From Leucoraja erinacea (Eukaryota): 46,706 nucleotides of DNA. Made by a program: the position numbers and the translations under genes. Below, piece after piece: positions 18,810-46,706 of this stretch (the stretch's first letter is position 1; each line of letters opens with the position of its first letter). The notes beneath the pieces were generated by a model that was not told where the DNA came from, made no database searches, and saw only the letters and a program-made list of their open reading frames with translations. Location of the stretch: positions 124,001-170,706 of the forward strand of contig NW_026576165.1 of NCBI RefSeq assembly GCF_028641065.1. The letters run 5' to 3'.

Positions 18810-19462
18810 AAGTCACATTTATTTCTATAGCACATTTAAAAAACAACTCTCGTTGGCCAAAGTGCTTTACATTTGTTATAAGAATAGCACAACAAAACAA
18901 ACTACATACATATATACATGTAGCCCTCACTCAGAGGACGTCGGGAAAGGCTTGGGAGTATAGATACGTCTTTAGTCTTGACTTAAAAGAGTCGATAGAG
19001 GGGGCTGTTCGTTCTGATGGGAAGGGGGATGCTGTTCCACAGTCTAGGGGCTGCAACCGCAAAGGCGCGGTCGATCGCCCCTGAGCTTATGCCTAGACCG
19101 CGGGATATTCAGCAACCCCAAGTCGGCCGATCTGAGGGGCCTGGAGGTGGAGTGGTGGGTGAGAAGACTTTTTATGTAGGTGGGGGCCCATTGAGGGCTT
19201 TGTAGACATGGAGGAGAATCTTGATGTTTATACGGAACCGCACAGGGAGCCAGTGGAGAGTTCTGCCAGGATCGGGGTGATGTGATGTGGTCCCTTTTTC
19301 GGGTGCCCGTCAGGAGTCTCGCTGCCCTGCGGCGTTTTGGACCAGTTGCAGGCGGGACAGGGAAGATTGGCTGATGCCAGTGTAGAGGGAGTTGCAGTAA
19401 TCGAGGCGGGAGGAGATAAATGTGTGGATGATCTTTTCCAGGTCATCAAACTGGAGGAATTG
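18810..19462 (-). mobile_element. L2 LINE 3' fragment
   Basis: Degraded SRLDYCN...LQLVQNAA...HITPILAELHWLPV region and L2-type tail. Confidence 0.82.
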
Positions 19463-20804: not shown

Positions 20805-21953
20805 TTGAATAAGATTAAAGCACACGGCATTGGGGGTTCAGTATTGATGTGGATAGAGAACTGGCTGGCAAACAGGAAGCAAAGAGTAGGAGTAAACGGG
20901 TCCTTTTCACAATGGCAGGCAGTGACTAGTGGGGTACCGCAAGGCTCAGTACTGGGACCCCAGCTATTTACAATATATATTAATGATCTGGACGAGGGAA
21001 TTGAATGCAACATTTCCAAGTTTGCGGATGACACGAAGCTGGGGGGCAGTGTTAGCTGTGAGGAGGATGCTAGGAGACTGCAAGGTGACTTGGATAGGCT
21101 GGGTGAGTGGGCAAATGTTTGGCAGATGCAGTATAATGTGGATAAATGTGAGGTTATCCATTTTGGTGGCAAAAACAGGAAAGCAGACTATTATCTAAAT
21201 GGTGGCCGACTAGGAAAAGGGGAGATGCAGCGAGACCTGGGTGTCATGGTACACCAGTCATTGAAAGTAGGCATGCAGGTGCAGCAGGCAGTGAAGAAAG
21301 CGAATGGTATGTTAGCTTTCATAGCAAAAAGATTTGAGTATAGGAGCAGGGAGGTTCTACTGCAGTTGTACAGGGTCTTGGTGAGACCACACCTGGAGTA
21401 TTGCGTACAGTTTTGGTCTCCAAATCTGAGGACGAACATTATTGCCATAAAGGGAGTGCAGCGACGGTTCACCAGACTGATTCCTGGGATGTCAGGACTG
21501 TCTTATGAAAAAAGACTGGATAGACTTGGTTTATACTCTCTAGAATTTAGGAGATTGAGAGGGGATCGTATAGAAACTTACAAAATTCTTAAGGGGTTGG
21601 ACAGGCTAGATGCAGGAAGATTGCTCCCGATGTTGGGGAAGTCCAGGACAAGGGGTCACAGCTTAAGGATCAGGGGGAAATCCTTTAAAATCGAGATGAG
21701 AAGAAACGTTTTCACACAGAGAGTGGTGAATCTCTGGAACTCTCTGCCACTGAGGGTAGTCGAGGCCACAGTTCATTGGCTATATTTAAGAGGGAGTTAG
21801 ATGTGGCCCTTGTGGCTAAAGGGATCAGGGGGTATGGAGAGAAGGCAGGTACGGGATACTGAGTTGGATGATCAGCCATGATCATATTGAATGGCGGTGC
21901 AGGCTCGAAGGGCCAAATGGCATCTACTCCTGCACCTAATTTCTATGTTTCTA
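20805..21953 (+). mobile_element. CR1 LINE, longest copy, partial reverse transcriptase domain
   Basis: GVPQGSVLGPQLFTIYINDL and SKFADDTKL motifs in a 331-aa ORF. Confidence 0.95.
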
Positions 21954-25971: not shown

Positions 25972-26609
25972 TGTCTTTCTCTCCCCACTTGTCCTCTCTT
26001 CACCTGGTGACCTCGAGAGAGAGAGAGAGAGAGAGGGAGAGAGGGGGCGGGCTGTTTCCCAGGCTTCACGAGCTAAACTCCACTGGGAATCTGGCTATTC
26101 CATGGTGGGGCTTCTCCCATTCCCCGCTCAGTCGGAACACCTGGGATAGCTTTGTCCTCCAGAAGGAACTCCAGACAAACCTAAATCTTCCGGAGGACAA
26201 GAGGTAGGATCTGTACGTTGGATATTTTCCCTGTGTTATATCAACCACTGTGGAAACAATAGGCAATAGACAATAGGTGCAGGAGTAGAGGCCATTCGGC
26301 CCTTCGAGCCAGCACCGCCATTCACTGTGATCACGGCTGATCATCCACAATCAGTACCCCGTTCCTGCCTTCTCCCCTGACTCCGCTATCTTTAAGAGCT
26401 CTCTCTTGAAAGCATCCAGAGAACCGGCCTCTGAGGCAGAGAATTCCGCAGACTCACAACTCTATCTGGGTGAAGGTAGACAAAAATGCTGGAGAAACTC
26501 AGCGGGTGAGGCAGTGTCTACGGAGCCAAGGGATGGGTGACGTTCTTCTGAAGAAGTCTCTCGACCCGAAACGTCACCCATTCCTTCGCTCCATAGATGC
26601 TGCCTCAGT

Positions 26610-28985
26610 AGGGAGTAGAGGAAGGAGGGGAGAAGGGGAGACGAGAGCAGGAATGAGAGGGGAGGAGAGGAGAGTAGAGAGGAGTGGAGGAGAGGAGAGA
26701 CGAGGAGAGGGGAGGCGGAGGAGGAGAGAGGAGAGCAGGAATGAGAGGGGAGGAGAGGAGAGTAGAGAGGAGTGGGAGGGAGGAGGAGGGGAGGAGGAGA
26801 GAGGAGGAGAGGGAGAGGCGGAGGAGGAGGAGAGGAGGGAGAGCAGGAAGGAGAGGGGAGAGAGAGAGGAGAGAGGAGAGAGGAGTGGAGGGGAGGGGGG
26901 AGGAGAGGAGAGAGAGGAGGTGGAGGAGGAGGAGAGGAGAGAGAGGAGGAATGAGAGGGGGGAGAGAGAGGAGAGGAGAGTAGAGAGGAGTGGAGGAGAG
27001 GAGAGGGGAGGAGAGAAGAGGAAAGGGGAGGCGGAGGAGGAGAGAGGAGAGCAGGAATGAGAGGGGAGGAGAAGAGAGTAGAGAGGAGAGGAGGAGAGGA
27101 GAGGAGGAGAGGAGGGAGAGGAGAGGAGGGAGAGGGGGCGGAGAGAGAGNNNNNNNNNNNNNNNNNNNNNNNNNNNNNNNNNNNNNNNNNNNNNNNNNNN
27201 NNNNNNNNNNNNNNNNNNNNNNNNNNNNNNNNNNNNNNNNNNNNNNNNNNNNNNNNNNNNNNNNNNNNNNNNNNNNNNNNNNNNNNNNNNNNNNNNNNNN
27301 NNNNNNNNNNNNNNNNNNNNNNNNNNNNNNNNNNNNNNNNNNNNNNNNNNNNNNNNNNNNNNNNNNNAGGGGGAGGAGAGGAGAGAGAGGAGAGAGAGGA
27401 GAGAGAGGGAGGGGAGAGGAGGGGAGAGAGTGAGGGGNNNNNNNNNNNNNNNNNNNNNNNNNNNNNNNNNNNNNNNNNNNNNNNNNNNNNNNNNNNNNNN
27501 NNNNNNNNNNNNNNNNNNNNNNNNNNNNNNNNNNNNNNNNNNNNNNNNNNNNNNNNNNNNNNNNNNNNNNNNNNNNNNNNNNNGAGAGGAGANNNNNNNN
27601 NNNNNNNNNNNNNNNNNNNNNNNNNNNNNNNNNNNNNNNNNNNNNNNNNNNNNNNNNNNNNNNNNNNNNNNNNNNNNNNNNNNNNNNNNNNNNNNNNNNN
27701 NNNNNNNNNNNNNNNNNNNNNNNNNNNNNNNNNNNNNNNNNNNNNNAGAGGAGAGGAGAGAGAAGAGAGAGGAGAGATGGGAGAGAGGAGAGAGAGGAGA
27801 GAGGGGAGGAGAGGAGAGAGTGAGAGGGAGTGTGAGAGAGGGGGAAGAGAGATATAGAGAAACAATGACGGGGAGNNNNNNNNNNNNNNNNNNNNNNNNN
27901 NNNNNNNNNNNNNNNNNNNNNNNNNNNNNNNNNNNNNNNNNNNNNNNNNNNNNNNNNNNNNNNNNNNNNNNNNNNNNNNNNNNNNNNNNNNNNNNNNNNN
28001 NNNNNNNNNNNNNNNNNNNNNNNNNNNNNNNNNNNNNNNGGGGAGGGGAGGGAGAGAGGGAGGAGGAGAAGGGGACGGGAGGAATGAGAGGGGAGGAGAG
28101 GAGAGAGGAGAGAGAGGAGAGAGAGGAGAGAGGGAGGAGAGGAGAGGAGAGGAGGAGAGGGAGAGGGAGGGGGGGAGGAGAGAGAGTGGGGAGAAGGGGG
28201 GGAGAGGGAGGGGGGGGGAGAGGGAGAGAGGAGTGTGAGAGAGGGGGAAGAGAGATAGAGAGAAACAATGGCGGAGAGGGAGGGANNNNNNNNNNNNNNN
28301 NNNNNNNNNNNNNNNNNNNNNNNNNNNNNNNNNNNNNNNNNNNNNNNNNNNNNNNNNNNNNNNNNNNNNNNNNNNNNNNNNNNNNNNNNNNNNNNNNNNN
28401 NNNNNNNNNNNNNAAAACGTCACCCATTTCTTCTCTCGAGAGTGTCAAAAATTCATAGTTGACTTATTTTATCTCTAGAGGAGGAGAGGAGGAAGAGAGG
28501 AGAGAGAGAGAGGGGAGGAGAGGAGTAGAGGAGAGGGGAGGAGAAGAGAGAGAGGAGGGAGGGGGGGAGGAGGAGGGAGAGAGGAGAGCAGGAATGAGAG
28601 GGGAGGAGGAGAGANNNNNNNNNNNNNNNNNNNNNNNNNNNNNNNNNNNNNNNNNNNNNNNNNNNNNNNNNNNNNNNNNNNNNNNNNNNNNNNNNNNNNN
28701 NNNNNNNNNNNNNNNNNNNNNNNNNNNNNNNNNNNNNNNNNNNNNNNNNNNNNNNNNNNNTAGAGGAGAGAAGGGAGGAGGGAGAGGAGAGGAGGGGGAG
28801 AGGATGGTAGAGGGGAGGGGGAGAGGAGGATGGAGAGAGGAGAGGGGAGAGAGAGAGTGAGAGGAGAGAGGGGAGAGGGGAGGGGAGAGAGAGGAGAGAG
28901 AGAGAGGGGAGGGGAGGAGGAGGGGAGGCGAGGAGGGGAGAGGGAGGGAGGTGGGAAGAGAGGAGTGAGAGGGAGAGGAGAGGGG
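26610..28985. repeat. GA-rich polypurine tract with six N gaps
   Basis: GAGAG/GGAGA units; N runs between 27150 and 28760. Confidence 0.95.
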
Positions 28986-29419
28986 AAGCAACTCTACCGC
29001 TGTGCCCCCGGTAATTTGGAAAGCCACCACCCCTCTCGCGACCACTCACTCACGAAGTTGCCGGCGATCGACCGGAGATATTAGCAGATTAGAGAGGGAA
29101 TCCCTGTCTGAAGAAGGGTCTCGACCCGAAAAAACGTCACCCATTCCAGTCCACCCTACACCACCCAGCCTCACCCCCCCCCCCAACCCCCCCCCCCCCC
29201 CCCTCCGAGATGCCCGGGGTCATGGCCCGAGATCCTACCTCAATATCTTCCAAAATGCTCGCTGCAGCTGCAAGGGCGGAGGGCAAGCAGCAAAGACAAC
29301 GCAGCTTCCTGAGCAGAGACGAGAGCTTCACCACAAAGCTCTCTGCACAGAGAAAAAAATAATCGTAAGAGTATTGTGTTGAGTTTTGGGCACCGTGTTG
29401 TAGGGAAGATGCCTTCGCG

Positions 29420-29791
29420 CTTGCAGTTTTGGCCTGTTGGCCTTCATAACAAGAGGAGTTGAGTACAGGAGCAAAGAGGTCCTTCTGCAGTTGTACAGGG
29501 CCCTGGTGAGACCACACCTGGAGTATTGTGTGCAGTTTTGGTCCCCTAATTTGAGGAAGGACATTCTTGCTATTGAGGGAGCCCAGCGTAGGTTCACCAG
29601 GTTAATTCCCGGGATGGCGGGACTGTCATATACTGAGAGAATGTGGAGCGGCTGGGCTTGTACACTCTGTGGAGTTTAGAAGGATGAGAGGGTATCTCAT
29701 TGAAACATATATGAGATTATTAAGGGTTTGGACACGCTAGAGGCAGGAAACATGTTCCCGATGTTCGGGGAGTCCAGAACCAGGGGACGGA

Positions 29792-29847
<56 letters not shown>

Positions 29848-30481
29848 CACACACACGCGGTCGGCCATTTAGAACGGAGACGAGGAAACGCTTTTTCTCA
29901 CAGTGAGAGTTGTGAGTCTGTGGAATTCTCTGCCTCAGAGGGCGGTTCTCTGGATGCTTTCAAGAGAGGCTCTTAAAGATAGCGGAGTCAGGGGATATGG
30001 GGAGAAGGCAGGAACGGGGGGGGGGAGGTACTGATTGGGGATGATCAGCCGTGATCACATTGAATGGCGGTGCTGGCTCGAAGGGCCGAATGGCCTCTAC
30101 TCCTGCACCTATTGTCTATTGTTGTATGTGATGCAGTCAAGCTTGAAAGGGCTCAGAGAAGGTTTACGAGGATGTTGCCAGGACTAGAGGGTGTGAAACC
30201 ATAGACAACAGGTGCAGGAGTAGAGGCCATTCAGCCCCTCGAGCCAGCACCGCCATTCAATGTGATCACGGCTGATCATCCCCAATCAGTACCCCGTTCC
30301 TGCCTTCTCCCCATATCCCCTGACTCCGCTATCTTTAAGAGCCCTATCTAACTCTCTCTTGAAAGCATCCAGAGAACCGGCCTCCACCGCCCTCTGAGGC
30401 AGAGAATTCCACAGACTCACAACTCTCTGTGAGAAAAAGTGTTTCCTCATCTCCGTTCTAAATGGCCGACCCCTTATTCTT

Positions 30482-38555: not shown

Positions 38556-38644
38556 TTAAACTTCTGACACATTTACAGAGACGGGGCTCGGCAAAGATGT
38601 GACGTCTTCACAAAGTTGGGTGTCTTCACGCACTGCACTGACAC
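38556..38644 (-). CDS. MHC terminal coding exon (GVSAVREDTQLCEDVTSLPSPVSVNVSEV*)
   Basis: Strong acceptor ctcttccttacttcccag|; open in phase 1 to a TAA stop. Confidence 0.58.
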
Positions 38645-38854
38645 CTGGGAAGTAAGGAAGAGACGGGATGATGCAGTCACAAACACAAGGCGGCAGCAGT
38701 CCAGTATTAGCTGTGTAAACCTCAGCGTTACATTGCCCAGACTCCGTTTGGTAGATTCCTGTCAGTGAAGTGCGCTCTGGTTAACTTTTATGATGCATTA
38801 TCTTTGGAACGTACTTTTGGAACGAAGACGAGGAGGAATTTATTTTGTCAAAGG

Positions 38855-39870
38855 ATAGAAACATCGAAAATAGGTGCAGGAGTAGGCCCTTCGGCCCTTC
38901 GAGCCTGCACCGCCATTTCAATGTGATCATGGCTGATCATCCAACTCAGTATCCCATCCCTGCCTTCTCTCCATACCCCCTGATCCCTATAGCCACAAGG
39001 GCCACATCTAGCTCCCTCTTAAATATAGCCAATGAACTGTGGCCTCAACTATCTTCTGTGGCAGAGAGTTCCACAGATTCACCACTCTCTGTGTGAAAAA
39101 TGTTTTTTCTGATCTCGGTCCTAAAAGATTTTTCCCTTATCCTTAAACTGTGACCCCTTGTTCTGGACTCCCCCAACATCAGGAACAATCTTCCTGCATC
39201 TAACCCTTAAGAATTTTGTAAGTTTCTATAATATCCCCCCTCACTCTTCTAAATTCTAGCGAGTACAAGCCGAGTCTATCCAGTCTTTCTTCATATGAAA
39301 GTCCTGCCCTCCCAGGAATCTGGTGAACCTTCTCTGTACTCCCTTTATGGCAAGAACATCTTTCCTCAGAATAGGAGACCAAAACTGTACGCAATACTCC
39401 AGATGTGGTCTCACCAAAACCCTGTACAACTGCAGTAGAACCTCCCTGCTCCTATACTCAAATCCTCTATGGCAAGAATGTCCTTCCTCAGAGTAGGAGA
39501 CCAAAACTGTACGCAATACTCCAGGTGTGGTCTCACCAAGACCCTGTACAACTGCAGTAGAACCTCCCTGCTCCCATACTCAAATCCTCTATGGCAAGAA
39601 TGTCTTTCCTCAGATTAGGAGACCAAAACTGTACGCAATACTCCAGGTGTGGTCTCACCAAGACCCTGTACAACTGTAGTAGAACCTCCCTGCTCCTATA
39701 CTCAAATCCTCCATGGCAAGAATGTCTTTCCTCAGATTAGGAGACCAAAACTGTACGCAATACTCCAGGTGTGGTCTCACCAAGACCCTGTACAACTGCA
39801 GTAGAACCCGCCTGCTCCTACAGGTATACTGAAATCCTTTTGCTATGAATGCTAACATTCCATTAGCTTT
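38855..39870 (-). mobile_element. CR1 with a 122-bp tandem array of about 4 copies
   Basis: caaatcct recurs at 39459, 39581 and 39703. Confidence 0.88.
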
Positions 39871-40078
39871 GGTTGGCGAATCTGTGGAATTCTTTGCCCC
39901 AGACGGCTGTGTTTTATGTTAAATTCTATAGTGTTGCGTTTATGTTATTTGTATGCTGCACGGTAACTCAAATTTCACTGCACGAATTGGTGTATGTCCT
40001 TGTTATTGTACTGCCTTGTCACTCGCCTCTGGCTAATGAGGGCGGCACTTATGGGTTAACGGCAGTGTTGCTTCCACA

Positions 40079-40307
40079 AGGGCCTGTCCCTCTTGGCGAT
40101 AGTTTTCGGCGACTGCCAGCATCATCGACTGATGCATCGGGTCACCAAATAAAATCGGGGCGTGACGATATACTGACGCGCGGTGTTTCATCGACTGTGA
40201 CGACGTTTTTTTCGTCGCCGTTCGATTTTGAAATGTTCCAAATCTTTTGGCGACCCTGATATGTCGCCGGAAGTCGCCGAAAAAGATCGGCAAGCGGGGC
40301 AGGCCCT
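40079..40307. mobile_element. MITE with long imperfect terminal inverted repeats (PIF/Harbinger-like) nested in a SINE head
   Basis: agggcctgtccc...ggcgat...ttttcggcgact versus agtcgccgaaaa..atcggcaag.ggggcaggccct; right flank TTA. Confidence 0.65.
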
Positions 40308-40559
40308 TTACAGTGTCCGAGACCCGGGTTCATCCTGACCGTGTCTTTGATAGGCTTTTAGATGGGCAGATGGGAGAGCAGGAAAATAGAGGGATAAGAA
40401 TCGTGTACATTGTTTAAACCAGCGTCTTGTTCGGCATAGACATTGTGGGCTGAAGGGACCCGTTCTCATGTTATATTGTACCTTGCTCTATGTCTGTTTG
40501 TTAAGGACCAGAGGCGATAGTCACGCTTAGCCATTTGCGTTTGACGAGGAGGTGTTTAC

Positions 40560-40631
40560 CTGAAGGCATATCTGGAAGGGTCATGAGTTGGCTCTGGATC
40601 GGCCCAAGTTGCGAGTCTCGGCTCTGGTTCA
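40560..40631 (-). CDS. MHC cytoplasmic exon 1 (VNQSRDSQLGPIQSQLMTLPDMPS)
   Basis: atctttctccag| acceptor and CAG|gtaaac donor; 72 bp, open in phase 1; unique island between repeats. Confidence 0.62.
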
Positions 40632-40732
40632 CTGGAGAAAGATAATCGCATGTTTCCACTTTGATGGAAGGAACAAGAAGGCAAGTTATTATCTGAATGG
40701 TGTCGGGTTAGGAAAAGGGGAAGTACAAGGAG

Positions 40733-41178
40733 ACTCACTCTGGCCATGGAGGAGGCCCAGGACAGAAAGGTCGGATTCAGAATGGGAGGGGGGGATGGGT
40801 TGAAGTGCTGAGCCACCGGGAGATCGGGTTAGTTATTGCGAACCGAGCGGAGGTGTTGGGCGAAGCGATCGCCGAGCCTGCGCCTGGTCTCACCGATGTA
40901 GAGCAGCCGACACCTAGAGCAGCGGATGCAATAGACGAGGCTGGAGGAGGTGCAGGCGAACCTCTGCCGCACCTGGAACGACTGCTTGGCTCCTTGGATG
41001 GAGTCGAGGGGGGGAGGTAAAGCGACAAGTGTAGCGTTTCTTGCGGTTGTAAGGGAAAGTACCAGGGAAGGGGGCGGTGGTTAGGGTGGGAAGGGACGAA
41101 TGGACCAGGGAGTTGCGGAGGGAGCGGCCTCTACGGAAAGGGGAGGAGATGGGAGCATCTGCAGTTCCTTCTTAAACA
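40733..41178 (-). mobile_element. Penelope-like element fragment (GIY-YIG region), diverged
   Basis: Similar to 19800-20220. Confidence 0.82.
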
Positions 41179-41196
41179 ATAGATAAGGTAGATAAT

Positions 41197-41709
41197 CGCC
41201 ATAGAGGGAGTGCAGAGAAGGTTCACCAGACTGATTCCTGGGATGTCAGGACTGTCTTATGAAGAAAGACTGGATAGACTTGGTTTATACTCTCTAGAAT
41301 TTAGGAGATTGAGAGGGGATCTTATAGAAACTTACAAAATTCTTAAGGGGTTGGACAGGCTAGATGCAGGAAGATTGTTCCCGATGTTAGGGAAGTCCAG
41401 GACAAGGGGTCACAGCTTAAGGATAAGGGGGAAATCCTTTAAAAACCGAGATGAGAAGAACTTTTTTCACACAGAGAGTGGTGAATCTCTGGGACTCTCT
41501 GCCACAGAGGGTAGTTGAGGCCACAGTTCATTGGCTATATTTAAGAGGGAGTTAGATGTGGCCCTTGTGACTAAAGGGATCAGGGGGTATGGAGAGAAGG
41601 CAGGTACAGGATACTGAGTTGGATGATCAGCCATGATCATATCGAATGGCGGTGCAGGCTCAAAGGGCCGAATGGCCTGTACTCCTGCACCTAATTTCTA
41701 TGTTTCTAT
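41197..41709 (+). mobile_element. CR1 LINE 3' fragment
   Basis: [23 protein letters not shown] and tail. Confidence 0.92.
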
Positions 41710-41870
41710 AATCAGAACCTTTTTCCTAAGGTATGCAAAGTCACCACATAAATGGTACCGAAGTACAGTATACTTGCATCCATGCAAATTGTGGAATTAG
41801 GAAGGGACCGAGACTAGGTTATAAAGAAAACTTTTCCTAGACTGACGAGGATATGTAAAAATGTTCCTAC

Positions 41871-41975
41871 CTTTCCATCTAATGACTCCTCCAGATAGAG
41901 CAATCAGAATACCGACTAATCCAGCCATTATTCCAACCACATATCCATAGACTGGTCCGTTTTGATTCTGGTGAA
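41871..41975 (-). CDS. MHC connecting peptide and transmembrane exon (VHQNQNGPVYGYVVGIMAGLVGILIALSGGVIRWK)
   Basis: tttttctccag| acceptor and G|gtagga donor; 105 bp, phase 1 to 1; Gly-rich hydrophobic span followed by RWK. Confidence 0.9.
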
Positions 41976-42316
41976 CTGGAGAAAAAGAGCTAGAGTCAGA
42001 AGATGTTACATTAAACGCAACTCTATCAGAAGGAATATTGTGGGAGATGGGTCTCGACCCGAAAAGTCGCCCATTCCTTCTCTCCAGAGATGCTGCCTGG
42101 CGCGCTGAGTTACTCCAGCATTTTGTGACTATGTGGGCAACTCTATCAGACTTCGGTTACCCCCCCCCCCCCCCAACCACGAGATTCCGGCCTGCAAAGT
42201 CGGCCGTGGAAGTCAGTCGGTGATGGGAATGGATCTGTTGTTTGTGGCCGGGACCGGCAGGAGAGGAGGGAGCAGGGAAACTTATCAGCCGTAGAAGTCC
42301 CGATTCTGATCCTTAC

Positions 42317-42601
42317 CCCAAACTGCAGTCAGGTTGTCAGGCACGCTCGTGTGTGTGATTTGGCAGGAATAGGTGTCGCCGATTCCACTGGGGTCAACAC
42401 TAAGCTGTAGTCTCATCTGGAACGTCCCGTCAAAGTTGGGCAGAACGTTGCTCCTTAGCACCTCTTGGTCGATGTCTTTGCCGTTCCGCAGCCAGGTGGT
42501 GTTGATGTCCATCGGGTAAAACCCATCCACTCTGCAGGTCAGGACCAAGGGATGTCCCTGTGCATTTGGACGCCTTGAGGTGATCGTGATCGCAGGTTTC
42601 G
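42317..42601 (-). CDS. MHC membrane-proximal Ig C1-set exon (alpha3/beta2 type)
   Basis: ccacttcag| acceptor and G|gtaagg donor; 285 bp, phase 1 to 1; LTCRVDGFYP, WLRNG, LPNFDGTFQ and YSCQITH motifs. Confidence 0.95.
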
Positions 42602-42659
42602 CTGAAGTGGACAGGAACAAACACAGAGTGTCAACGTGCTCAACGGCGTCAGGATTTTT

Positions 42660-44522
42660 AGTCAAGACAAGACAAGACAAGTCACATTTATTTCTATAGA
42701 ACATTTAAAAAACAACTCTCGTTGGCCAAAGTGCTTTGCATTTGTTATAAGAATAGCACAACAAAACAAACTACATACATAGGTTACACAGAAAAGCTGG
42801 AGAAACTCAGCGGGTGCAGCAGCATCTATGGAGCGAAGGAAATAGGCAACGTTTCGGGCCGAAACCCTTCTTCAGACTGATCGGGGGTGGGGGTAGGTGG
42901 GGACAAGAAAGGGAAAAGGAGGAGTAGCCAGAAGGCTGGAGGGTGGGAGGAGACAGCAGGGGAGCTGAGGAAGGGGAGGAGACAGCAAGGACTAACAAAA
43001 TTGGGAGAATTCGATGTTCATGCCCCCGGGGTGCAGACTCCCCAAACGGAATATGAGGTGCTGTTCCTCCAATTTCCGGTGCTGCTCGCTGTGGCCATGG
43101 AGGAGACCCAGGACAGAGAGGTCGGAGGCGGAGTGGGAGGGGGAGTTGAAGTGCTGAGCCACCGGGAGGTCAGCTTGGTTATTGCGGACCGAGCGGAGGT
43201 GTTCGGCGAAACGATCGCCCAACCTCCGCTTGGTCTCACCGATATAGATCTGCTGACATCTAGAGCAGCGGACGCAATAGATGAGGTTGGAAGAGATGCA
43301 GGTAAACCTCTGTCGCACCTGGAACGATTGCTTGGGTCCTTGAACGGAGTCGAGGGGGGAGGTAAAGGGACAAGTGTTGCATCTCTTGCGGTTGCAAGGG
43401 AAAGTGCCCGGGGAGGGGGTGGACCGAGAGGGGAAGGGAAGAATTGACAAGGGAGTTATGGAGGGAGCGGTCTTTGCGGAAGGCAGATATGGGGGGAGAT
43501 GGGAAGATGTGGCGAGTAGTGGGGTCACGTTGGAGGTGGCGAAACTGACGGAGGATTATTTTTTGTATGTGACGGCTGGTGGGGTGAAAGGTGAGGACTA
43601 GGGGGACTCGGCCCTTGTTGTGAGTGCGGGGATGGGGAGAGAGAGCAGTGTTGCGGGGTATGGAGGAGACCCTGGTGCAAGCCTCATTTATGGTGGAGGA
43701 GGGGAACCCCCGTTCCCTGAATAGTGAGGACATTTCAGATGTCCTGGTGTGGAACGCCTCATCCGTGGAGCAGATGCGGCGTAGACGGAGGAATTGGGAG
43801 TAGGGGATGGAGTCCTTACAGGAAGCAGGGTGGGAAGAAGTGTAGTCCAGATAGCCATGGGAGTCAGTGGGTTTATAGTGTATGTCGGTTAGAAGTCTAT
43901 CACCTGCAATGGAGATAGTGAGGTCAAGGAATGGTAGGGAAGTGTCGGAAATGGTCCAGGTGTATTTCAGTGCCGGATGGAAATTAGTGGTGAAGTGGAT
44001 GAAGTCAGTCAGTTGTGTAAGGGGAGTCTGCACCCCCGGGGCATGAACATCGAATTCTCCCAATTTTGTTAGTCCTTGCTGTCTCCTCCCCTTCCTCAGC
44101 TCCCCTGCTGTCTCCTCCCACCCTCCAGCCTTCTGGCTACTCCTCCGTTTCCCTTTCTTGTCCCCACCTACCCCCACCCCCGATCAGTCTGAAGAAGGGT
44201 TTCGGCCCGAAACGTTGCCTATTTCCTTCGCTCCATAGATGCTGCTGCACCCGCTGAGTTTCTCCAGCTTTTCTGTGTAACCTTCGATTCTCCAGCATCT
44301 GCAGTTTCCTCTTAAACAAACTACATACATATATACATGTAGCCCTCAGTCAGAGGACATCAGGAAAGGCTTGGGAGTATGGATAAGTCTTTAGTCTTGA
44401 CTTAAAAGAGTCGATAGAGGGGGCTGTTCGTTCTGATGGGAAAGGGGGATGCTGTTCCACAGTCTAGGGGCTGCAACCGCAAAGGCGCAGTCGATCGCCC
44501 CTGAGCTTGTGCCTAGACCGCG
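42660..44522 (-). mobile_element. L2 3' end split by the Penelope insertion (42660-42781 and 44314-44522)
   Basis: The two pieces join into the sequence seen at 18810-19100. Confidence 0.82.
42782..44313 (-). mobile_element. Penelope-like element (RT C-terminus and GIY-YIG) with an inverted terminal copy, inserted in an L2 tail
   Basis: LPFLDLTI...HYKPTD and IY..C..C..IYIGET motifs; 42782-43045 is inverted at 44020-44282; aaacaaactacatacata duplicated at 42764 and 44314. Confidence 0.92.
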
Positions 44523-44548
44523 TGATGTGAAGCCGTGCAAAACCTTAC

Positions 44549-44869
44549 CCGTCTCAGCTCGGATGGCTCCTTTAACTATGTGCGAGATCATTGGCCAGCG
44601 GCGCATGTACCGAACATAGTTTCTGATAACTCTCTCATTTTTCTTCAGCTCCACTGGCTCCCTGTGCGTTTCCGTATAAACTTCAAAATACTCCTCCATG
44701 TCTACAAAGCCCTGAATGGCATATGGCTCCGCCAGCCGGTGTTTGGCTACAAACGTGTTCGAGGAGTATTCAAAGCTGATGAACTCTTTGCCGTCGAATG
44801 CAAATCGCAGGACCGCCAGGGAGGAATCTTCACCAGCGCAAGAAATGCTCACTTGACCCACGTGCATCC
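44549..44869 (-). CDS. MHC groove-domain exon (class I alpha2 / W-category beta1 type) with an internal L2-derived insert
   Basis: ctcaccag| acceptor and G|gtaagg donor; 321 bp, phase 1 to 1; MHVGQVSISC...FAFDGKEFISF matches the H93/Q96/C101 and A117-x-D119-G120-x-D/E122 pattern. Confidence 0.85.
44649..44719 (+). mobile_element. L2 LINE ORF2 C-terminal fragment inside the MHC exon
   Basis: The + strand reads LHWLPVRFRINFKILLHVYKALNG; reverse complement is near-identical to L2 copies at about 19188-19260 and 45990-46040. Confidence 0.9.
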
Positions 44870-44912
44870 CTGGTGAGCGGAAAATAATCGATGTTACGCA
44901 CCGCTGGGGTGA

Positions 44913-46258
44913 AAGTCAAGTCAAGTCAAGTCACATTTATTTCTATAGCACATTTAAAAAACAACTCTCGTTGGCCAAAGTGCTTTACATTTGTTATAAG
45001 AATAGCACAACAAAACAGACTACATACATATATACATGTAGCCCTCACTCAGAGGATGTCAGGAAAGGCTTGGGATTATAGATAAGTCTTTAGTCTTGAC
45101 TTAAAAGAGTAGATGGATGGGGTTGTTCATTCTGATGGGAAACATAGAAACATAGAAATTAGGTGCAGGAGTAGGCCATTCGGCCCTTCGAGCCTGCACC
45201 GCCATTCAATATGATCATGGCTGATCATCCAACTCAGTATCCCGTACCTGCCTTCTCTCCATACCCTCTGATCCCCTTAGCCACAAGGGCCACATCTAAC
45301 TCCCTCTTAAATATAGCCAATGAACTGGCCTCAACTACCCTCTGTGGCAGAGATTTCCAGAGATTCACCACTCTCTGTGTGAAAAAAGTTCTTCTCATCT
45401 CGGTTTTAAAGGATTTCCCCCTTATCCTTAAGCTGTGACCCCTTGTCCTGGACTTCCCCAACATCGGGAACAATCTTCCTGCATCTAGCCTGTCAAACCC
45501 CTTAAGAATTTTGTAAGTTTCTATAAGATCCCCTCTCAATCTCCTAAATTCTAGAGAGTATAAACCAAGTCTATCCAGTCTTTTTTCATAAGACAGTCCT
45601 GACATCCCAGGAATCAGTCTGGTGAACCTTCTCTGCACTCCCTCTATGGCAATAATGTCCTTCCTCAGATTTGGAGACCAAAACTGTACGCAATACTCCA
45701 GGTGTGGTCTCACCAAGACCCTGTACAACTGCAGTAGAACCTCCCTGCTCCTATCTCGCTGCATCTCCCCCTTTCCCAATCGGCCACCATTTAGATAATA
45801 GTCTGCTTTCCCGGGAAGGGGGATGCTGTTCCACAGTCTAGGGGCTGCAACCGCAAAGGCGCGGTCGATCGCCCCTGAGCTTATGCCTAGATCGTGGGAT
45901 ATTCAGCAACCCCAAGTCGGCCGATCTGAGGGGCCTGGAGGTGGAGTGGTGGGTGAGAAGACTTTTTATGTAGGTGGGGGCAGGGCAAGCCCATTGAGGG
46001 CTTTGTAGACATGGAGGAGTATTTTGAAGTTCATACGGAAGTCTCGCTGCCCTGCGGCATTTTGGACCAGTTGCAGGCGGGACAGGGAAGATTGGCTGAT
46101 GCCAGTGTAGAGGGAGTTGCAGTAATCGAGGCGGGAGGAGATAAATGTGTGGATGATCTTTTCCAGGTCATCAAACTGGAGGAATTGGTTTATTTTAGCT
46201 ATCGTCCGAAGCTGGAAGAAGCTAGCTTTTACCACGGCATTGACTCGTTTGTCAAATT
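44913..46258 (-). mobile_element. L2 LINE fragment interrupted by CR1 (about 45141-45812)
   Basis: KIIHTFISSRLDYCNSLYTG...SRLQLVQNAA ORF; (CTTGA)n tail at 44913; CR1 ORF at 45234-45779. Confidence 0.88.
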
Positions 46259-46706
46259 GTCGAAAGGCACCCATTCACCACATGCCCTCTTCCCCCCTTA
46301 CCTGCTGCCAAATTCATCCCCCACCCATGCCCTCTTCACCCCCCCCCCCAAACCTCCTCCTCTGCAAATCAGGTCAAGGTCACACTTATATATTGGCCTT
46401 ACAAGACAAGATGTGCTGCAGGGAAAGAAAATTGGCAATGGCTCGGCGGGGTTGTGGCAAAACGAAACAGCAGACACACACAACAGCCCCCCCCCAACAG
46501 AACTAACCGTCCCCGCGGAACGTTTTTTAGCGATATTTTTAGCAGAAATTGTTACGCAGAGAATAGATAATTCGCTCCCCCCCGAGCCCCGTATTTATAG
46601 AAGGATCCCCACTCCCATTCCCTATCGGTTTGATAACAGGATGAAGCAGGTGTAACAGGAGACCCACAGAGTGAGAAAAAAGGTAACAAAAAGTGATGGA
46701 GAAATC

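Follow-up and report, generated by a model that had tools for sequence, protein, structure and literature searches.

A probable WB_DS1-like gene of W-category MHC in the little skate, whose groove exon carries an in-frame insertion derived from a repeat

To which category of the major histocompatibility complex (MHC) does a gene belong when its groove and immunoglobulin (Ig) exons carry residues of the class I type and its transmembrane (TM) segment has the glycines of a class II beta chain? Such a gene lies on the minus strand, at positions 38556-44869, of a stretch of 46,706 nucleotides from the genome of the little skate, Leucoraja erinacea (contig NW_026576165.1, positions 124,001 to 170,706; this whole stretch is hereafter called the window, and positions are counted from its first letter). 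It has been proposed that W-category molecules are intermediate between class II and class I of the MHC. A sequence-only reading of the window took the gene for a batoid WB gene of this category or for a related, undescribed lineage. The analysis reported here gives a probability of roughly nine in ten that the region is the little skate WB_DS1-like gene, which encodes a W-category MHC beta chain, or else an allele of this gene or a copy that was duplicated very recently. The idea of an undescribed lineage did not hold, because the lineage was published for this same species in 2021 (Okamura et al., 2021, PNAS, PMC8713811). The gene also has RefSeq models already, and the sole unreported detail of the locus is a repeat-derived in-frame insertion of 63 bases in the groove exon.

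The gene was found to form one open frame on the minus strand, composed of five exons that are bounded by AG acceptors and GT donors and are in phase 1 at every junction, as had been described from the letters alone. The groove exon, which encodes the membrane-distal beta1 domain, lies at 44869-44549 (321 nucleotides, phase 1 at both ends; this and all following exons are on the minus strand), and its in-frame part, 44867-44550, translates into 106 amino acids. It is followed by the Ig C1 exon for beta2 at 42601-42317 (285 nucleotides), which matches C1-set of Pfam with an E-value of 4e-18, and by the exon for the connecting peptide and the TM segment at 41975-41871 (105 nucleotides), with glycine spacing of the class II beta type. 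Two cytoplasmic exons complete the frame: the first, at 40631-40560 (72 nucleotides), was located by tblastn with the Amblyraja radiata isoform P0016, and the second, at 38644-38556, by tblastn with P0014, P0015, and P0016. The latter ends in a TAA stop codon (38558-38556) at the position usual in the family. In total, 289 codons are open and the eight visible splice sites are all canonical. The exons were queried singly, and an identical database protein, P0023, was used as a stand-in for the joined, spliced product.

This protein, P0023 (XP_055486150.1), is a Leucoraja erinacea sequence of 289 amino acids. The groove exon is 100% identical to its residues 1-106 and the Ig exon to its residues 108-201, while the other three exons match the remainder by translation, the second cytoplasmic exon yielding its C-terminus; the junction codons GCG, GTT, GTG, and GGT encode residues that are present in it. 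RefSeq models the gene as isoforms X1 to X3 (XP_055486149, XP_055486150, and XP_055486151; the isoform entries are P0030, P0023, and P0031), all three of which begin at a Met inside the beta1 exon (MHVGQ), with no leader or signal peptide. Isoform X1 uses an alternative acceptor 27 nucleotides upstream of cytoplasmic exon 1 (start 40658; 40632-40658, minus strand), which adds nine residues, and isoform X3 skips that exon, just as the penultimate cytoplasmic exon of houndshark WB_DS1 is alternatively skipped (PMC8713811). The models thus describe the same gene, but their name, “class II histocompatibility antigen, B-L beta chain-like,” leaves its W-category membership unrecorded. The expectation that annotation pipelines would call it class I-like was accordingly wrong for this gene; a truncated second copy in the little skate (P0026), however, bears the RefSeq name “MHC class I-related gene protein-like.”

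The link to the W category is made by the published sequences of the same species. The supplement of Okamura et al. (2021; PMC8713811) gives a WB_DS1-like sequence of the little skate as a partial composite of a transcriptome contig and a whole-genome shotgun contig, with which the translated exons were compared by eye, no alignment tool being used. Across the 44 residues displayed in the row “little skate WB DS1 like 01” of Dataset S2, the start of the Ig exon is identical to the published sequence. The groove exon is nearly identical to the beta1 domain of “little_skate_WB_DS1-like” outside a 21-residue insertion; approximately 8 residues in 85 differ from the published complementary DNA (cDNA), as counted in text from optical character recognition.

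W-category molecules are defined by a class II-type layout of alpha and beta chains, chain-specific TM glycines, and WA/WB gene pairs that stand head to head; their interface residues are of the class I type, namely Q6, A32, G35, and D37 in beta1 and P57 and G61 in beta2, the last of which replaces W61, a residue that is invariant in conventional class II beta chains (Okamura et al., 2021; PMC8713811). In the window gene, the groove exon carries G-M-H-V-G-Q...C and FAFDGKEF, which are equivalent to H93/Q96/C101 and A117-D122 of class I alpha2 in an alignment with PDB sequences; the class I alpha2 residues for binding of beta2-microglobulin, which the sequence-only reading had picked out, are therefore present and aligned. 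Residues Q5, A23, G26, and E28 of beta1 correspond to the published Q6, A32, G35, and D37, the equivalent of D37 being a Glu here and likewise in houndshark WB DS1. The Ig exon reads LPNFDGTFQ, in agreement with the class I-type LPNxDGTFQ previously seen in it, and in beta2 the counterparts of P57 and G61 are P161 and G165. When 16 family members are aligned, Q5, G26, and P161 are invariant, A23 is nearly so, and most members have the Gly equivalent to G61; W61 is missing, its place being taken by Gly in the window gene and by residues other than Trp in every member. The TM exon bears GIMAGLVGILIALSG, and the beta-type glycines anticipated for this segment, G216, G220, G223, and G231 in the numbering of P0023, are invariant in all 16 members. 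The pattern GYV.GI..G..GI.IAL.GG is common to the window gene and houndshark WB DS1 (Dataset S3, PMC8713811). The gene therefore resembles WB_DS1 of sharks and little skate in its beta2 domain, its near-identical beta1 domain, its TM glycines, its phase-1 exons, and the class I-type residues Q6, A32, G35, acidic 37, P57, and G61 (PMC8713811). With class I alpha2 and alpha3 it shares the H93/Q96/C101-type start, A-x-D-G-x-acidic, and P-x-x-D-G-T-F-Q; the cysteine pair of the alpha2 disulfide C101-C164 is not found in the family, the first Cys standing alone in skates and being replaced by Gly in rays, and the helix Cys occurring in no member.

The same architecture recurs in other batoids and in a shark. 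When the groove exon served as the query of an exhaustive HMMER search, a single protein was returned, from Mobula hypostoma (291 amino acids, with leader, groove domain, Ig domain, TM segment, and tail), and word-based searches seeded with this protein and its relatives revealed the family in Amblyraja, Rhinoraja, Leucoraja, Pristis, Mobula (two species), Hemitrygon, and Hypanus and in the shark Heptranchias; a search with the Ig region gave 13 candidates. In these eight species other than the little skate, the relatives are 262-336 amino acids long, and most consist of a leader, beta1, beta2, a TM segment, and a tail. In most of their gene models a hydrophobic leader stands directly before the G-M-H-(V/I)-x-Q start of beta1, and none of the family gene models of the eight species contains an alpha1 domain. 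Together with the identity of the Ig exon to the published row, this direct junction of leader and groove domain bears out the earlier proposal of a batoid WB gene that combines the layout of class II beta with ectodomain motifs of the class I type.

In a maximum-likelihood tree, the window protein falls into a group with WB_DS1-like proteins of batoids and a shark, from which five class I chains stand apart. Within this group it is the sister of Amblyraja radiata P0014 (support 99/97), and the two together are the sister of a second A. radiata locus, P0032 (support 96/96). A. radiata contains two paralogous WB_DS1-like loci, P0014/P0016 on a 1.9-Mb contig and P0032 on a 17.7-Mb contig, and the window gene is orthologous to the locus on the 1.9-Mb contig. 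Given this topology, the two WB_DS1-like loci of skates predate the split between Amblyraja and Leucoraja, and the insertion occurred later, on the Leucoraja side. The second little skate protein mentioned above, P0026, is encoded on a 31.9-kb contig, begins inside the Ig domain, and has the SCHITH variant of the published sequence; of 153 residues compared with the window protein, 3 are different, and the little skate assembly therefore holds two near-identical copies or haplotypes.

The 5′ side of the gene is short in this assembly. With 170,706 bp, the scaffold has a length equal to 2 × 62,000 + 46,706, and position 46706, where the window ends, thus appears to be the scaffold end as well, 1.8 kb upstream of the beta1 exon. 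The stretch in between (44870-46706, minus strand) comprises dispersed repeats and about 400 nucleotides of unique sequence. As the sequence-only reading had held, it contains no visible alpha1 exon: tblastn with six family proteins found neither a leader nor an alpha1 exon in 44870-46706. A five-codon ATG...GT stretch near 46310 was considered as a leader and rejected, because it is too short for a signal peptide. That the leader is unseen and that the isoforms start at a Met of beta1 can be explained by a leader exon that fits beyond the scaffold end. Two pattern scans of the 46.7-kb window for a second C1-set-like open frame, as a WA gene would have, found none, although these scans were crude and a very divergent exon could be missed. 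In the great white shark, the gene pairs are WA_DS10L/WB_DS1L, WA_DS5L/WB_Nds5L, and WA_Nds3L/WB_DS3L (PMC8713811); by analogy, a WA_DS10-like gene would be the expected neighbor beyond 46706.

What distinguishes the copy in the window is the insertion in its beta1 exon. The insertion occupies 44652-44714 (63 nucleotides, minus strand), and the 21 amino acids that it encodes, numbers 52-72 of the translated exon, fall in the half of beta1 that is helical; because of it, the groove exon measures 321 nucleotides as compared with about 258 in relatives. It is a multiple of three, keeps the frame, and contains no stop codon. In the alignment it is lacking in the 15 family members from eight other species, and it is likewise lacking in the published little skate cDNA, which at this point reads ...PYAI-ELNKNE.... 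A repeat-like stretch of 71 nucleotides around the insertion (44649-44719) is homologous to a dispersed repeat, copies of which occur in the opposite orientation at 45999-46031 (33/33 nucleotides) and 19196-19228 (30/33 nucleotides), where 0 would be expected by chance. This stretch overlaps the flanking gene sequence by 5 nucleotides (CCATT) on one side and by 3 nucleotides (GAG) on the other, and the insertion thus looks like filler that was introduced through microhomology rather than by transposition. Open frames in the adjacent repeats gave no Pfam domains.

The chances that the insertion-bearing copy makes a working chain are about even, and several points weigh against the reading of the region as the WB_DS1-like gene. 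The rows of the tree exclude class II beta chains and the published shark WB sequences, so that the tree is no test of the W-category placement, which therefore rests on the identity to the published sequence and on the motifs; the phylogeny of beta2 is itself poorly resolved in the published study (PMC8713811). In a model made with AlphaFold2 (AF2), the predicted local distance difference test (pLDDT) falls below 50 at residues 54-81, which take in most of the insertion, and the Pfam MHC_II_beta match of the relatives is lost in the insertion-bearing groove exon. Neither a leader nor a WA gene is seen for this copy, and both would fall past the scaffold end. Four sequencing runs, three of raw RNA reads and one of contigs (run X1, taken to be RNA by guess), were aligned to 40707-46706; between 5% and 25% of each of the raw RNA runs was read, and their tissues are not recorded. 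The three raw RNA runs place almost no reads on the exons, and every read over the inserted stretch has G instead of T at 44669, which suggests other copies of the repeat as their source. A contig of 153 nucleotides from run X1 covers 42502-42601 exactly to the edge of the Ig exon, and the depth over the last part of the beta1 exon, on its 3′ side, is explained by the remaining 53 nucleotides; the contig supports the splice between beta1 and beta2. Because the encoded residues agree across the junction, however, this contig cannot separate the window copy from the insertion-free cDNA. Upstream of 44869, none of the transcript cover in the aligned region is attributable to the gene: most of the aligned reads are repeat-derived, and RNA depth is very high and multi-copy at 45107-45906 and nil at 46307-46706. 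Since the runs were read in part and their tissues are not recorded, the scarcity of reads on the exons is weak evidence of silence.

These points bear most directly on the possibility that the copy in the window is a null allele of the WB_DS1-like gene or a duplicate in decay, with a groove helix spoiled by the insertion and an open frame that survives only because the event is recent. This explanation concerns the working of the copy rather than its family and is compatible with the WB identity of the locus, and its probability, although somewhat short of one half, is considerable. It would account for an insertion that is unique among 16 family members, missing from the published cDNA, and joined by microhomology in place of exon-like splicing, as well as for the unseen leader, the nearly uncovered exons in the three RNA runs, and the want of any insertion-specific read. 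It would also fit the uneven divergence of the copy, whose beta1 domain is off the published cDNA at the roughly 8 of 85 residues already mentioned, whereas the rest is off P0026 at only 3 of 153, and there is a precedent in houndshark WB_DS1_n2, a possible pseudogene (PMC8713811). On the other hand, all 289 codons are open, the eight splice sites are canonical, and the stop codon is in its family position, and the insertion itself is stop-free and a multiple of three. RefSeq models three isoforms of the gene, the end of the scaffold suffices to explain the absent leader, and the RNA runs are of unrecorded tissue. At the other extreme, it is tempting to speculate that the insertion is a retained and expressed co-option that lengthens the beta1 helix, such that the rim of the groove would be reshaped and the copy would be a second chain of the WB_DS1 type, or an allele, still pairing with a WA_DS10-like partner; this must be regarded as doubtful.

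A second alternative denies the W-category identity and takes the gene for a divergent but conventional class II beta gene. The class II beta names that RefSeq gives across the family would agree with this, as would the Pfam MHC_II_beta match in 13/13 insertion-free family members (best E-value 1.2e-7), 7 of which (7/13) also match MHC_I, more weakly. P0014, for instance, scores 25.2 bits against MHC_II_beta (cutoff 20.9); the window exon itself has no match because the insertion splits the region. The AF2 model, which was used for topology and for ranking by Foldseek only, is of modest quality (mean pLDDT 60) and shows four strands and helices, followed by a confidently predicted Ig domain and a TM helix. 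Its top Foldseek matches are the beta chains of HLA-DR, DQ, and DP, aligned over both domains with E-values of about 5e-13, while the identity to conventional class II beta chains is only about 23%. With HLA-DRB and other such chains the window gene indeed has in common a single half-domain of the groove, the C1 domain, and spaced glycines in the TM segment. It differs from them, however, in having P57 and G61 and no W61 in beta2 and in retaining class I-type A32, G35, and acidic 37 among the interface residues of beta1. Moreover, its sequence agrees with the published WB_DS1-like, and the RefSeq names are automatic best-hit labels. The double signal of MHC_II_beta and MHC_I in the family is what one would expect of the W category. 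A conventional class II beta gene is quite improbable. The remaining alternative, a three-domain non-classical class I heavy chain with its leader and alpha1 exons beyond the window, is very unlikely, since the models of eight other species include no alpha1 and mostly join the leader directly to beta1: the class I-type motifs, the weak match of the groove exon to the MHC_I alpha2 region in Pfam (E-value 0.01, below the cutoff), its best PDB sequence matches, which are class I alpha2 domains aligned through C...FAFDGKEF, the top scores of the Ig exon to class I alpha3, MR1, and CD1 chains, which are inflated by beta2m fusion constructs, and a 5′ end that is out of view all speak for it, but the WB family differs from class I heavy chains in its missing alpha1, its missing second alpha2 Cys, and its beta-type TM glycines, and the cDNAs published for this lineage encode chains with two domains (PMC8713811).

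If the locus is the WB_DS1-like gene, as preferred here, a feasible model of its product may be drawn from the relatives and from the published system. The chain would start, as in the relatives, with a signal peptide directly before beta1, which is the layout of class II beta; the five exons then encode a single groove half-domain (beta1, of four strands and a helix), a C1-type Ig domain (beta2), a TM segment whose glycines are of the beta type, and a cytoplasmic tail, which is short. Class I-type interface residues are carried on this chain. Through the half of the groove that it contributes, through its Ig domain, and through the glycines of its TM segment, the chain may pair with a separately encoded WA chain resembling beta2-microglobulin, and the likely partner, to judge from the head-to-head neighbor of WB_DS1 in sharks, would be of the WA_DS10-like type (PMC8713811). 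WA and WB together would probably make up a heterodimer of class II shape, joined by interfaces of the class I type and by the packing of TM glycines, and be brought to the cell surface; a WA/WB heterodimer whose surface expression needs both chains has been reported for the tiger salamander only (PMC8713811). In the copy studied here, a fragment of a dispersed repeat was pasted into the beta1 helix, probably by way of the short microhomologies.

Other repeats occupy the gene and its surroundings. The intron between beta1 and beta2 holds, at 42800-44300, a repeat element of approximately 1.5 kb with inverted copies of approximately 190 nucleotides at its ends (near 42800-42990 and 44110-44300, as seen by eye); its open frame of 305 amino acids (43260-44177, minus strand) has no Pfam match and shows very high, multi-copy RNA depth, and a fragment related to it lies at about 40760-41130. 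Farther away, an open frame at 20805-21800 on the plus strand matches RVT_1 of Pfam (1.3e-14) and is presumably the remnant of a long interspersed nuclear element. Six runs of N, each of 128-218 nucleotides, lie at 27150-28760, within a segment (26001-30000) whose GC skew (0.39-0.55) and AT skew (0.33-0.46) are extreme, and probably represent a simple or satellite repeat that was masked or left unresolved.

Relative to the published little skate WB_DS1-like, the copy in the window adds the insertion and the few beta1 substitutions, and it also shows the TM segment, the cytoplasmic exons, and the intron structure. For a skate gene that was previously known as a partial composite, the window thus supplies, as a modest gain, the complete arrangement of exons and introns between beta1 and the stop codon. 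It further offers a clean case in which part of a repeat was inserted, with the frame kept, into the groove helix of an MHC chain. Finally, the automatic RefSeq names given to these genes, such as “class II B-L beta chain-like” and “MHC class I-related,” hide membership in the W category across batoids.

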